A stretch of 64,000 nucleotides of DNA, taken from positions 109,182,001 to 109,246,000 of the forward strand of contig NC_067401.1 in assembly GCF_016432865.1 (NCBI RefSeq). Direction: 5' to 3'. A program made the position numbers and the translations under genes. This DNA is from Antechinus flavipes. Taxonomy: Eukaryota. Shown here piece after piece: positions 27,881 through 45,446 of this stretch (positions are counted from its first letter, which is position 1; each line of letters starts with the position of its first letter). A model generated the notes under the pieces. It was not told the origin of the DNA and ran no database searches. It saw only the letters and a list, made by a program, of their open reading frames with translations.

Positions 27881-27961
27881 TCAGGAGTAGCTGCTGTGTC
27901 TTCGGCGGAGGAGGGAGGCAGAGGGCATTGTGGAATCCTCTTGGTCGCTCTCACAGGCTCT
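27881..27961 (-). CDS. DAPK-like coding exon 11 (DAPK2-type tail)
   Basis: 81 bp; cttcatccag|[26 protein letters not shown]; resembles the DAPK2 tail as I recall it (RNCESDTEED...PRRRSSTS). Confidence 0.87.
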   Translation of the reverse strand, partial: RACESDQEDSTMPSASLLRRRHSSYS

Positions 27962-42900: not shown

Positions 42901-45446
42901 CTTTAAGACCCTTCAGGCTTCCCTCCCCCTTTGGAGAAGCACGCTTCCCATCCCAGGACACTCACAGCTCCAACACCAGCACCATCTGGACCTGGCAGAT
43001 GAAGACGTCATGCAGCTGCATGATGTGACGGTGTTGCAGCTGCTGCAGGATTTCCACCTCTCGATTTACCACCTTACGTTCTATCCCTATTCTGCTGCCT
43101 TTCCTCCGACGCATCCTGATGAATTTGGCCGCATAAGATATCCCTGAGGACCGTTCCCGGCATCTCCAAACTGTGGCAAAGTGCCCACTGAAGGGGTAAG
43201 AGAGTGTGGGGCAAGAAGTACCAGAGTGCTCTAATCAGTGTTTCTCAAATGGACCTCGGGCAAGATTCTTGCCTTGCTCATGCAGTTCCATCTACCTGGG
43301 ATGCCCTTACTTCCCCTCTACAATTATAAAGGAAAAAAAAAAATGCTAGCCATCCTTCAAGGTCCAACTTACATGTCACCTTCTTCACTTAGACTTCCCT
43401 GCTTTTCCTGGCAAGAAAATTGCCCTCCTTCCACTTGATTCCTTTAGAATTTTGTTGTAACACTCACAAGACTTTTTTTAGATTAGATTTTCAATTAGAT
43501 GAAAGAGGAGATTCTTTGCCTCAATGAGTGCAGTCTCAGTTAAACCAATTGAAGACTTTAGCTTAAAAAGGCCAAGGGCTTCCACTGCATCCAAGGCCAT
43601 TCCAGTCCTCCTGATCTATATCTGGCCACTGGACCCAGATGGCTCTGGAGGGAAAAGTGAGGCCGGAAAATGAGGTATCACCTTCATGATATCATGGTCT
43701 TCTTGAAGAATAAAGGACAAACAGCAAGGCACCTCTATACTGCCTTGTATTATAGTTATGTGTGCCCATCTCATAACACCTATAAGCTTGTAGGTTCCTT
43801 GAGGGCAGAGATCACTTTTTATGCACTTGACAGTGAGCTAGTAGTCAATCAAGAAGTCAGACTTATATAGGCTGTTTTGCCACTAACTAGATGTGTGACC
43901 TTGGAAAAGCCATTTGGGTCTTTCAGTTTCAGTTTTGATGTGCTATAATAATATAAACAGCATCCATAGAGTATATGCACTCAGAAATCAATTCAATAAA
44001 TGTTAAGCATTATTATTATAATATGTGTGTGTGTGAAGTTTCACGGGCTTACTTATGGAATACATAAATATTAAAGCCCAAAGGGCAATGTGGCAACATG
44101 CAACATCCTAAAGGTGTATCCACCAAATGTAAGCTAAGCAGGTACAACAATCTGGAATTTGGGTGCCTAGTCTAACTAATCGCTCCAAAGCATTTGGGGA
44201 GGAGGAGAAGATTTCAATATCTGAGTATCCTTGTTGGGAATAATGGAAAGAGAAAATCAGGGATCTGGTCTCAATAGAACCATACCAATCAACTAACAGG
44301 TATTTATTTTGTGTCTACTGATTACCCTGTGTAGAGGACTCAGAGGACCAGGAGCTCCCATCAGTGGAAAAATTCTCAAGTCTAATCTTCATCCTTCAAC
44401 AATCACTCATAATTCAATCAATAGTTAATTGTATATAGTCCTACGCTAGAGTCTAGCATAGACTGCTAGAGTATAGGAGGGATTTAAAGACATGTAAAAC
44501 AGAATCCTGTCCTCGGGATACTTCCAGTATTCTGGGGAATTATCATTCCATATTATAATAAGTGTCTGAATCTATAAAATTATCTATTGAAATATTTGTA
44601 ACAATTACCTGACTTTTATAAGGTCCACTTCTTGAGAAACCTTTTTATAAACAAAAAATATAACTAATATAAGGCAATAAATGTGATAAGTACCAAGTGA
44701 GCATTTGCTTTCTAGGAAAGCAAATAAGTGAAGTTAATTTCAGGATAAGGTAATAAGGAAATAAAGAGTTGTAGGATGAACTGGTTCAAATTAATGCCTA
44801 GAATTTTTGTTTTTCTTCCCGGGTTATTTATACCTTCTGAATTCAATTCTCCCTGTGCAACAAGAAAACTGTTCGGTTCTGCACACATATATTGTATCTA
44901 GGATATACTGCAACCCATTCAACATGTAAAGGACTCTTGCCATCTGGGGGAAGGGGTGGAGGGAGGGAGGGGAAAAATCGGAACAGAAGTGAATGCAAGG
45001 GATAATGCTGTAAAAAATTACCCTGGCATGCGTTCTATCAATAAAAAGTTATTTAAAAAAATAAATAAAAATAAAATAAAAAAACAAATTAATGCCTAGA
45101 TAAATAGAGGAGGTTAGTGCTAGGGGAGGGTATTCATCCATTCCCTCCAGATGGGAAAGACAGCATAACACAAAGTTTAAAATGAGCAGGGGCATATTTG
45201 CAGGGCCCAGGAGCAGCTCTCTGAGCAGAACGGAGGGGAGGGGAGTGCTTTGTGGCACTTTGACAACAGCAAGGTAAGGGCCACCTAGGCTAAAACCCAA
45301 AGTTGGGCTTCCAGCCAGGAAGCCAGACATCCTCTTTCCCATGTTGGCCCAGGGACAGGGCACCAGCCTCAAAGCCCATTTCACCTGCCCAGCTTATCCT
45401 GCAGCTCATACAGCTCCTCCACATTGCCTGGTGGGACCAGGGACAT
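27881..45446 (-). CDS. DAPK2-like death-associated protein kinase paralog, 11 coding exons, 360 aa, GFG in place of DFG (candidate pseudokinase)
   Basis: Exons of 62/222/139/130/49/27/153/46/90/84/81 bp (1083 nt), all GT-AG, phase-matched, no stops. Motifs GSGHFATV, YAAK42, E64, HFD139LKPEN, GFG, APE, RKWKLS308, C-terminal RRRHSSYS*. The first nine sizes match my recollection of DAPK1/DAPK2. Confidence 0.93.
28234..28317 (-). CDS. DAPK-like coding exon 10
   Basis: 84 bp; cccattctag|[28 protein letters not shown]|gtgaga. Confidence 0.82.
28861..28950 (-). CDS. DAPK-like coding exon 9 (autoinhibitory/CaM-binding)
   Basis: 90 bp; [30 protein letters not shown]|gtgagc. Confidence 0.92.
29133..29178 (-). 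CDS. DAPK-like coding exon 8
   Basis: 46 bp; [15 protein letters not shown]. Confidence 0.93.
29759..29911 (-). CDS. DAPK-like coding exon 7
   Basis: 153 bp; [50 protein letters not shown](K). Confidence 0.94.
30326..30352 (-). CDS. DAPK-like coding exon 6
   Basis: 27 bp; attctag|...SVGVITYI(L)|gtgagt. Confidence 0.9.
30801..30849 (-). CDS. DAPK-like coding exon 5
   Basis: 49 bp; (A)[15 protein letters not shown](W)|gtgagg. Confidence 0.92.
31526..31655 (-). CDS. DAPK-like coding exon 4 (GFG motif)
   Basis: 130 bp; [43 protein letters not shown]|gtaggt. Confidence 0.93.
33220..36420 (-). mobile_element. Old degraded L1, about 3 kb, spanning the assembly gap
   Basis: T-rich + strand with degenerate antisense L1 phrasing; boundaries approximate. 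Confidence 0.55.
35821..35961. other. Assembly gap, 141 N
   Basis: Run of n inside the long DAPK-like intron; flanking exon phases need no missing exon. Confidence 1.
37413..37773 (+). mobile_element. Solo LTR, 361 bp
   Basis: TGTAGAGGG...GTCGTCACA, AATAAA near 37697, flanks TATTTT/TATCTT (6-bp TSD with one mismatch). Confidence 0.7.
38740..39640 (+). mobile_element. RTE LINE reverse-transcriptase fragment
   Basis: Decayed [21 protein letters not shown] and [14 protein letters not shown] motifs, interrupted by a MIR-like piece. Confidence 0.7.
39953..40094 (+). mobile_element. WSINE1-type SINE
   Basis: Close to the other two copies; imperfect TSD around tttgagcaga. Confidence 0.85.
41332..41530. 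mobile_element. hAT/Charlie-like MITE
   Basis: Ends cagaagttcttaa...ttaagaattcct form an inverted pair; a related piece lies near 3330-3480. Confidence 0.45.
42361..42499 (-). CDS. DAPK-like coding exon 3
   Basis: 139 bp; [46 protein letters not shown]. Confidence 0.95.
42966..43187 (-). CDS. DAPK-like coding exon 2
   Basis: 222 bp; [62 protein letters not shown]...MVLVLE|gtgagt. Confidence 0.93.
44803..45085 (+). mobile_element. 5'-truncated L1 3' UTR with TSD
   Basis: 15-bp TSD AAATTAATGCCTAGA (44788-44802 and 45086-45100), A-rich tail. Confidence 0.9.
45385..45446 (-). CDS. DAPK-like coding exon 1
   Basis: accATG...[22 protein letters not shown]|gtgaaa; 62 bp. Upstream acceptor ctttctccccag at 45529 gives an exon starting at 45528. 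Confidence 0.88.

Follow-up and report, generated by a model that had tools for sequence, protein, structure and literature searches.

The main account of how the death-associated protein kinase (DAPK) family evolved recognized only DAPk, DRP-1, and ZIPk, all arising at the origin of jawed vertebrates, together with DRP-1 duplicates of teleosts; at least five fragmentary DAPk genes of the elephant shark were mentioned, but no fourth paralog of tetrapods, and the beta form of DRP-1 was attributed to an alternative 3′ exon encoding a ZIPk-like tail (PMC3050894). In this work, a stretch of 64,000 nucleotides from the genome of the marsupial Antechinus flavipes (contig NC_067401.1, positions 109,182,001 to 109,246,000 of the forward strand; hereafter, the window) was analyzed, which carries on its minus strand a gene encoding a 360-amino acid kinase. 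This gene is very probably the A. flavipes ortholog of an ancient fourth DAPK, most likely derived from the two early vertebrate genome duplications and apparently lost by eutherians, whose product has, in marsupials, most likely become a constrained pseudokinase.

At the level of sequence, pseudokinases are defined as proteins without the VAIK lysine, the HRD aspartate, or the DFG aspartate (PMC4718504). A described protein relevant to this definition is CASK, a CaMK-group kinase without the DFG aspartate, which has an intact glycine-rich loop and β3 lysine and is active without cations (PMC4718504).

Identification of the Gene and Its Assignment to the DAPK Family

The gene was rebuilt from the letters of the window alone as 11 exons running from position 45446 to 27881, with GT at all donors, AG at all acceptors, and consistent phases. 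The spliced coding sequence of 1083 nt encodes a stop-free 360-aa kinase and closes with TGA at 27881-27883. An earlier reading of this DNA (hereafter, the preliminary description) had claimed 11 phase-matched GT-AG exons giving a stop-free protein of 360 aa, and the reconstruction returned the same coordinates and length. The deduced protein is identical in 360 of 360 residues to XP_051849714.1, the RefSeq “death-associated protein kinase 2-like isoform X1” of A. flavipes, so that the guess that automated pipelines would label the gene DAPK2-like was correct; the locus corresponds to CM028220.1:109,199,881-109,237,446 of assembly GCA_016432865.2. The Pfam Pkinase domain was matched over the full profile (E 1.3e-67), and because of this match and of the identity to an independent RefSeq model, a chance open reading frame (ORF) is excluded.

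The similarity of the window protein to DAPKs was found at several levels. In comparisons with PDB sequences, exon 2 placed human DAPK1, DAPK2, and DAPK3 on top (66-74 bits, with the next family at 34 bits), and the complete protein scored 367 bits with DAPK1, 366 bits with DAPK2 (collinear over residues 8-359), and 324 bits with DAPK3, the next families (twitchin and CaMKI) following at about 200 bits. The kinase domain, most similar to those of DAPKs, falls inside the vertebrate DAPK clade of the tree described below, with invertebrate DAPKs outside, and both the basic loop between β3 and αC (KRRxxSSRRGV type) and the HFDLKPEN loop were read from exons 2-4. A putative calmodulin-binding autoregulatory segment (RKWKLS, with the Trp305 anchor and Ser308) was recognized from its sequence. 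The AlphaFold2 model, obtained with a 42-sequence alignment (mean pLDDT 82, pTM 0.81), is confident for the kinase domain and predicts a helix at residues 293-312 and a disordered tail at 311-360. Foldseek placed this model on the catalytic-plus-autoregulatory structures of DAPK1 and DAPK2 with a target-normalised template modelling (TM) score of 0.96, a root-mean-square deviation (rmsd) of 1.1-1.6 Å, and 48-54% identity.

Judged from sequence and predicted fold, the closest counterpart in architecture is DAPK2/DRP-1 of human and mouse (PDB 2ya9, 2a2a, and 6paw). Both proteins are of near-equal length, are collinear over residues 8-359, and share the basic loop, the HFDLKPEN loop, the calmodulin-binding helix with Trp305 and Ser308, and a short tail with the basic, serine-rich end RRRxSSxS; the predicted fold superposes on DAPK2 at a target-normalised TM of 0.95-0.96. 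However, their overall identity is only 43-47%, they belong to separate clades and loci while coexisting in the same genomes, and DAPK2 carries DFG in the place of the GFG of the marsupial window-type protein. The marsupial stem branches differ as well: 0.013 substitutions per site for the extremely conserved DAPK2 versus 0.41 for the fourth gene. DAPK1 (PDB 2x0g and 6fhb) scored equally to DAPK2 (367 bits) and its catalytic and autoregulatory domains also superpose (rmsd 1.1-1.6 Å), but the 1430 aa of DAPK1 also comprise ankyrin repeats, a ROC-COR region, and a death domain, none of which occurs in the window protein. The gene is an additional member of a known kinase family, and not a new kind of system.

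Phylogenetic Position and Distribution of the Fourth DAPK

Homologs were sought with exon 2 as the query among 1.84 billion cluster representatives. The nearest full-length representatives were 57-61% identical to the query, the top one being a protein of Lacerta, and fragmentary representatives of the same type had their best matches exclusively in sauropsid or fish members, none of them mammalian. The Lacerta protein led to a set of proteins named “DAPK2-like” (best 120 matches) from squamates, turtles, crocodilians, birds, frogs, salamanders, caecilians, lungfish, coelacanth, and both monotremes. Marsupial members were recovered with a profile of the platypus protein and the window exons (again among the best 120 matches), and the gene was found in nine marsupials, i.e., Antechinus, Sarcophilus, Dromiciops, Notamacropus, Trichosurus, Macrotis, Petaurus, Monodelphis, and Gracilinanus. 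With a profile built on genuine DAPK2 sequences, the canonical DAPK2 was recovered alongside the DAPK2-like protein in several species, among them Monodelphis, platypus, Hyla, Xenopus, Varanus, Columba, Mauremys, and Latimeria. The separate canonical DAPK2 that the preliminary description had proposed to look for in this genome was found as well: it is XP_051836849.1, a member of the cluster of Monodelphis DAPK2, encoded on a 686-Mb scaffold, the window gene lying on the 486-Mb one. A. flavipes, Sarcophilus, Monodelphis, and six more marsupials have a separate DAPK2 on another scaffold, which differs from that of Monodelphis by at most one residue (within the kinase domain used in the tree).

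The maximum-likelihood (ML) tree was built on the kinase domain only (51 sequences, 270 columns, LG+C20+F+G4). Vertebrate DAPKs formed a single clade (support 98/94), with the DAPKs of amphioxus, Ciona, octopus, horseshoe crab, and insects outside, and were divided into DAPK1 plus DAPK3 (89/89), DAPK2 (100/99), and DAPK2-like (100/99, 28 rows). The last group, including the window protein, gathered sequences of Callorhinchus (on a long branch), bichir, gar, teleosts, coelacanth, lungfish, amphibians, sauropsids, monotremes, and marsupials, and its branching tracks the species tree from fishes to mammals; each tested DAPK clade reaches at least coelacanth or shark. The DAPK2-like clade, with its elephant shark member on that long branch, spans jawed vertebrates and arose after the split from invertebrate chordates, and by this tree the fourth DAPK is as old as jawed vertebrates. 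A quick tree including the C-terminal tails, in which DAPK1 and DAPK3 were nested within DAPK2, was distorted by the tails of DAPK2 beta isoforms and was dropped.

The joining of marsupial DAPK2-like proteins and DAPK2 into one clade was rejected by the approximately unbiased (AU) test (p 0.0009) at a cost of 63 log-likelihood units. The window protein is therefore not a one-to-one ortholog of DAPK2, given the other DAPK2 in the genome, the separation of the clades at 100/99, and the AU result, and the proposal that it is a fourth paralog, too divergent to be DAPK2, was upheld on the same grounds. By clade and exon lengths, and in platypus by neighbors too, the “DAPK2-like” genes of monotremes, sauropsids, amphibians, and fishes (e.g., platypus, Pelodiscus, and gar) are the same gene as that of the window. 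Their products differ from the marsupial ones in keeping the canonical DFG, GT, and N144 and in evolving more slowly, and are 54-59% identical to the window protein.

Neither of the two clade-directed protein searches yielded a eutherian protein among its best 120 matches, though these lists reach teleosts, and all eutherian matches of the DAPK2-profile search were DAPK2 itself. An intact eutherian ortholog is thus apparently absent, and the protein lists point to a loss in the eutherian stem. It was previously suggested that the gene had been kept in marsupials and lost in the human lineage; the second part agrees with the lack of any eutherian member in these lists, but retention is not specific to marsupials, as it concerns nearly all non-eutherian jawed vertebrates. 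The groups that still have the gene are cartilaginous and bony fishes, amphibians, sauropsids, monotremes, and marsupials; in the stem of eutherians, it was apparently lost.

The kinase gene is already present in RefSeq, under a name that is uninformative or, in Sarcophilus, wrong. The naming is inconsistent: the Sarcophilus ortholog of the fourth-clade gene is called “DAPK2 isoform X1”, a DAPK2 of Trichosurus “DAPK3-like”, several bird DAPK2 proteins of the beta type “DAPK3 kinase, partial”, and the fourth-clade members of chicken, gar, bichir, and coelacanth plain “DAPK2”. The listed isoforms of DAPK2-like genes span 283-371 aa. A literature search found no paper on a fourth DAPK paralog, most subscription journals being outside its coverage, so that an earlier description is possible; the term “DAPK4” was encountered in the literature only as a name of a small interfering or short hairpin RNA, not of a fourth paralog. 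The gene is annotated yet apparently undescribed in the searchable literature.

Substitutions in Catalytic Residues of the Marsupial Proteins

The full set of catalytic residues (β3 Lys, αC Glu, catalytic Asp, Asn, and DFG Asp), present in non-marsupial orthologs, is incomplete in Antechinus, where the DFG aspartate is Gly161 and the others are kept. Glycine occupies this position in all nine marsupials, and aspartate in all 36 non-marsupial DAPK2-like and DAPK2 sequences compared; all australidelphians read KIIGFGMAQ. None of the marsupials has lost the glycine-rich loop, K42, E64, D139, or K141. Altogether, 13 positions that are conserved in at least 92% of the sequences elsewhere are changed in marsupials, five of which belong to the activation segment or its vicinity. 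At position 180 (P+1 loop), where threonine is invariant elsewhere, six marsupial species have L, T, I, L, M, and V, which suggests that constraint at this site has been lost. In didelphids (Monodelphis and Gracilinanus), further changes were observed, i.e., GFE, N144I in the catalytic loop, and W305K at the calmodulin anchor, with the ORF intact in both species.

With D161G, the marsupial proteins fall under the sequence definition of pseudokinases given above, as far as activity can be read from sequence. As the DFG aspartate is lost and yet purifying selection has been held (see below), the most likely reading is that the marsupial protein is a conserved pseudokinase in which the C-terminal basic-serine tail and, outside didelphids, the calmodulin helix are retained. 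The Mg-binding aspartate was replaced by glycine in the marsupial stem, where protein evolution became faster, and purifying selection has acted throughout the marsupial radiation; the product would most likely be a calmodulin-regulated scaffold or regulator, which keeps the fold, the Lys and Glu of the nucleotide pocket, and the regulatory modules. Non-marsupial orthologs, since they have all catalytic residues and the DAPK2-type regulatory modules, are presumably active kinases regulated by Ca2+/calmodulin.

Selection and Transcription

The gene is under purifying selection and is not decaying. The ratio of nonsynonymous to synonymous substitutions (dN/dS) between Antechinus and Dromiciops (both GFG) was 0.21 (NG86) or 0.26 (ML), with dS of 0.23-0.28, a bootstrap 95% interval of 0.13-0.31, and no replicate above 0.45. 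The Sarcophilus protein is identical to that of the window in 359 of 360 residues (99.7%). Moreover, an intact ORF of 359-360 aa and a conserved splice structure were found in nine marsupial species, and because these nine intact ORFs share D161G, the gene has been kept since before the split of didelphids and australidelphians.

Of the 31-mers sampled from region 27600-31700, RNA runs of several studies contained 0.24-0.31, the share of exons plus 3′ untranslated region being about 0.23. For the segment exon 2-intron 2-exon 3, the RNA runs contained 0.36-0.45 of the 31-mers (exonic share 0.38-0.44). In DNA runs, the values were 0.71-1.0. Together with the RefSeq isoform models, these shares indirectly support that the gene is transcribed.

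Gene Structure and Genomic Neighborhood

The features of the window are collected in Table 1. All 11 exon lengths are identical in the Dromiciops ortholog, and the single differences in the other two species compared are a last exon of 78 nt in platypus and an exon 10 of 87 nt in gar. Two other candidates for exon 10, i.e., 28414-28292 and an exon of 36 or 48 nt near 28560, were ruled out by frame or splice sites. The only run of N in the window is separated by 4.2 kb from exon 4 and by 6.4 kb from exon 3. Because the junction of these exons reads HFDLK|PENIML, an unbroken DAPK catalytic loop, and because of the exon lengths of the orthologs, no exon is concealed there, and only the length of intron 3 is uncertain. 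The public record of the locus mismatches the window at 141 positions, which equals the count of N, and the stretch may be masking and not a true gap. Regarding the gene models of other marsupials, that of Petaurus (348 aa) is devoid of the 27-nt exon 6; moreover, a 211-aa Ribosomal_L19e gene, probably a retrocopy, was called on the opposite strand in an intron of the Petaurus gene, and a 298-aa gene with a Pex19 domain, probably a very long or chimeric model, was called on the opposite strand across the whole 45.6-kb locus of Dromiciops.

Table 1. Coordinates of the exons of the kinase gene and of other features within the window.
Feature	Position	Strand	Characteristics
Exon 1	45385..45446	-	62 nt; ATG 45446-45444; GT donor; phase fits exon 2; same length in Dromiciops, platypus, and gar
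Exon 2	42966..43187	-	222 nt; glycine-rich loop GSGHFA, β3 lysine (AAKF), DAPK basic loop, αC glutamate
Exon 3	42361..42499	-	139 nt; AG/GT; ends at a codon boundary, closing with catalytic loop HFDLK
Exon 4	31526..31655	-	130 nt; DFG aspartate replaced by glycine (G161); P+1-loop GT replaced by GL (L180)
Exon 5	30801..30849	-	49 nt
Exon 6	30326..30352	-	27 nt; SVGVITYIL; 27-nt exon also in Dromiciops, platypus, and gar
Exon 7	29759..29911	-	153 nt; C-lobe
Exon 8	29133..29178	-	46 nt; end of kinase domain, HPWIK
Exon 9	28861..28950	-	90 nt; putative calmodulin-binding/autoregulatory helix with W305; AlphaFold helix 293-312
Exon 10	28234..28317	-	84 nt; LSCHM...KEDEDL, including S308; collinear with DAPK2 tail region
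Exon 11	27881..27961	-	81 nt including TGA; tail motif CESDQE...LLRRRxSSxS kept from gar to marsupials
Run of 141 N	35821..35961	.	only N run of the window; noncoding, inside 10.7-kb intron 3 (42360-31656)
Candidate promoter	45750..47000	.	just upstream of exon 1; GC 0.54-0.68; 10-19 CpG per 250 nt versus 0-4 in flanks
INSRR	1..21622	+	5′ part beyond window start; last base of stop codon 21622; 6.26 kb from the kinase gene, the two being tail to tail
Probable first coding exon of SH2D2A	63494..63679	+	PAPTFSTFHSK; GT donor after 63679; weak tblastn match (E 0.002) to 5′ exon of platypus SH2-domain gene

The placement of the gene between INSRR and SH2D2A, as claimed in the preliminary description, agrees with the present results, the two neighbors being identified with different strength. 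The last exon of INSRR gave 90 bits with residues 1225-1297 of human INSRR (49 with IGF1R and 44 with INSR). SH2D2A was tentatively recognized by the weak match listed in Table 1; no tblastx match to it was obtained, and no Pfam domain was found in the piece 63494-63679. In the 18-kb interval that separates the kinase gene from SH2D2A, three similar plus-strand ORFs (48166-48435, 51976-52290, and 60040-60378; …LGLYPKEILKKGKGPVCAKMFVAALFVV.RNWK…WYMNVMEYY…) were noticed, which we take to resemble the C-terminal part of LINE-1 ORF2 copies.

In platypus, the order of genes is PRCC, an SH2-domain gene, DAPK2-like, and an insulin-receptor-family kinase. In Monodelphis, an SH2-domain gene lies upstream, head to head, and a gene encoding 1306 aa lies downstream, tail to tail, and in Dromiciops, Trichosurus, Petaurus, and Antechinus an insulin-receptor-family kinase is located tail to tail, 6-7.5 kb downstream. 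Thus, DAPK2-like adjoins INSRR or an insulin-receptor-family kinase in six mammals. At the Xenopus locus, nothing was found in the flanks. In the platypus assembly, DAPK2-like and the INSRR-like gene share a strand, the head of the latter coming next to DAPK2-like (N-terminal furin-like exons at 18.4-19.0 kb of the locus record, of which 14207-24206 was compared with 1-21622 of the window), versus the tail-to-tail orientation in five of five marsupials; this may be a lineage-specific inversion or a difference of assemblies. In gar, downstream of DAPK2-like (24923-28364 of the locus record), a 1203-aa protein of Lbc/ARHGEF2 type with C1, RhoGEF, and PH domains is encoded. Mammalian members of the Lbc/ARHGEF2-type family lie in the 1q/5q/15q/19p paralogy regions, and this neighbor could help to test the genome-duplication origin of the fourth DAPK.

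On the human map, DAPK1 is located with NTRK2 (9q21), DAPK2 with NTRK3 and IGF1R (15q), and DAPK3 with INSR (19p13), and, to our knowledge, no DAPK adjoins the human INSRR/NTRK1 region (1q23). The fourth gene, situated in the INSRR/NTRK1 paralogy region, would then be the fourth copy resulting from two early vertebrate genome duplications. Because of this position and of the timing given by the tree, such an origin is considered the most likely, the human paralogon positions used in the argument being general knowledge.

Alternative Explanations

The names given by automated pipelines (DAPK2-like and, in Sarcophilus, DAPK2), as well as the architecture and length equal to those of DAPK2, could speak for a divergent marsupial ortholog of DAPK2 (DRP-1). 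There is practically no chance of this, as a separate DAPK2 is encoded on another scaffold in A. flavipes and other marsupials, the two clades stand apart (100/99, with the AU result in agreement), and the locus lies beside INSRR and not in the DAPK2 neighborhood. Equally negligible is the possibility that the gene is a young DAPK duplicate that arose in marsupials or mammals: a fast-evolving young copy could be mimicked by the long stem branch and the low identity to DAPK2 (43-47%), but the same 11-exon structure is found in gar and the same neighborhood in platypus, and the branching within the clade mirrors that of the species, from fishes to mammals. Both explanations are refuted; for the recent lineage-specific duplication, which the preliminary description had named among the outcomes that would overturn it, the decisive observations are the depth of the clade (back to the elephant shark), the exon structure shared with gar, and the platypus neighborhood. 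A further explanation concerns the fate of the gene, which may be dying, being intact in appearance but on its way to a unitary pseudogene. This would fit D161G, the freely varying T180, the accelerated evolution, and the additional motif losses of didelphids (GFE, N144I, and W305K). It is nevertheless very unlikely, because the ORF and splice structure are intact in nine marsupials and have been so from a time before didelphids and australidelphians diverged, the dN/dS value is 0.21-0.26 with the bootstrap limit given above, Antechinus and Sarcophilus are 99.7% identical, and RNA runs contain the exonic share of sequence words.

Several points weigh against the proposed fourth, eutherian-lost DAPK with a pseudokinase product in marsupials. 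The eutherian absence is taken from the best-120 protein lists and from what is generally known of the human kinome, without a search of eutherian DNA; dN/dS comes from one species pair only; transcription is deduced from sequence-word shares and RefSeq isoform models; and the grouping submitted to the AU test was picked after the tree had been seen, though it is the one (grouping with DAPK2) that the preliminary description itself had named as its refutation. In addition, the tree leaves the mutual order of the vertebrate DAPK groups undecided, and its sampling of DAPK1 and DAPK3 is thin (one cat DAPK3, one partial mammalian DAPK1, and two unnamed relatives), with no lamprey or hagfish, so that an origin before the genome duplications or by a small-scale event is still conceivable. 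An ancient paralog that a small-scale duplication, earlier or later than the two genome duplications, had produced, with a coincidental adjacency to INSRR, would be compatible with this undecided order, with the lack of cyclostomes, and with a paralogon argument that leans on established human map positions. We regard it as improbable, as the four DAPKs fall within a single vertebrate clade (98/94) that leaves the DAPKs of amphioxus, Ciona, and protostomes outside, and the gene lies precisely in the sole region of that map free of DAPKs, i.e., INSRR/NTRK1 at 1q23. Finally, inactivity does not follow from the missing DFG aspartate, CASK being the counter-example. The marsupial protein could be an atypical kinase of this kind, transferring phosphate without magnesium, a mechanism that we consider a minor but realistic possibility, less likely than a pseudokinase. 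CASK's CaM-kinase domain resembles it in belonging to the CaMK group and in having lost the DFG aspartate while keeping the glycine-rich loop and β3 lysine, and the corresponding loop, K42, E64, D139, and K141 are kept in all marsupial species; CASK also is without the catalytic-loop asparagine, to which the didelphid N144I is parallel. However, CASK is not an ortholog but a MAGUK scaffold with L27, PDZ, SH3, and GK domains, so the resemblance may be only a functional analogy, and the drift of T180 and several activation-segment sites among marsupials fits a loss of substrate phosphorylation better.

Significance of the Fourth DAPK

The DAPK field, as well as the standard account of the evolution of the family (PMC3050894), arrives at three members, since this is the number in human and mouse, and the locus described here shows that ancestrally there were four in jawed vertebrates. 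The fourth gene fills the only empty slot of the insulin-receptor/NTRK paralogy regions, and its apparent loss is dated to the eutherian stem. In Xenopus, chicken, zebrafish-type fishes, and opossum, it offers for study a DAPK that mouse cannot offer. The marsupial form is a clean natural case, in which the DFG aspartate was lost and purifying selection was kept, and it may help to separate the catalytic from the scaffolding roles of DAPKs. More speculatively, and with rather low expectations, an ancestral active DAPK might have turned into a conserved, still-signalling GFG protein, either a CASK-like Mg-independent kinase or a pseudokinase regulated by calmodulin and 14-3-3 and controlling the canonical DAPKs. 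If this were true, marsupials would represent a natural experiment of about 80 million years on the non-catalytic roles of death-associated kinases, performed in a gene lost by eutherians.

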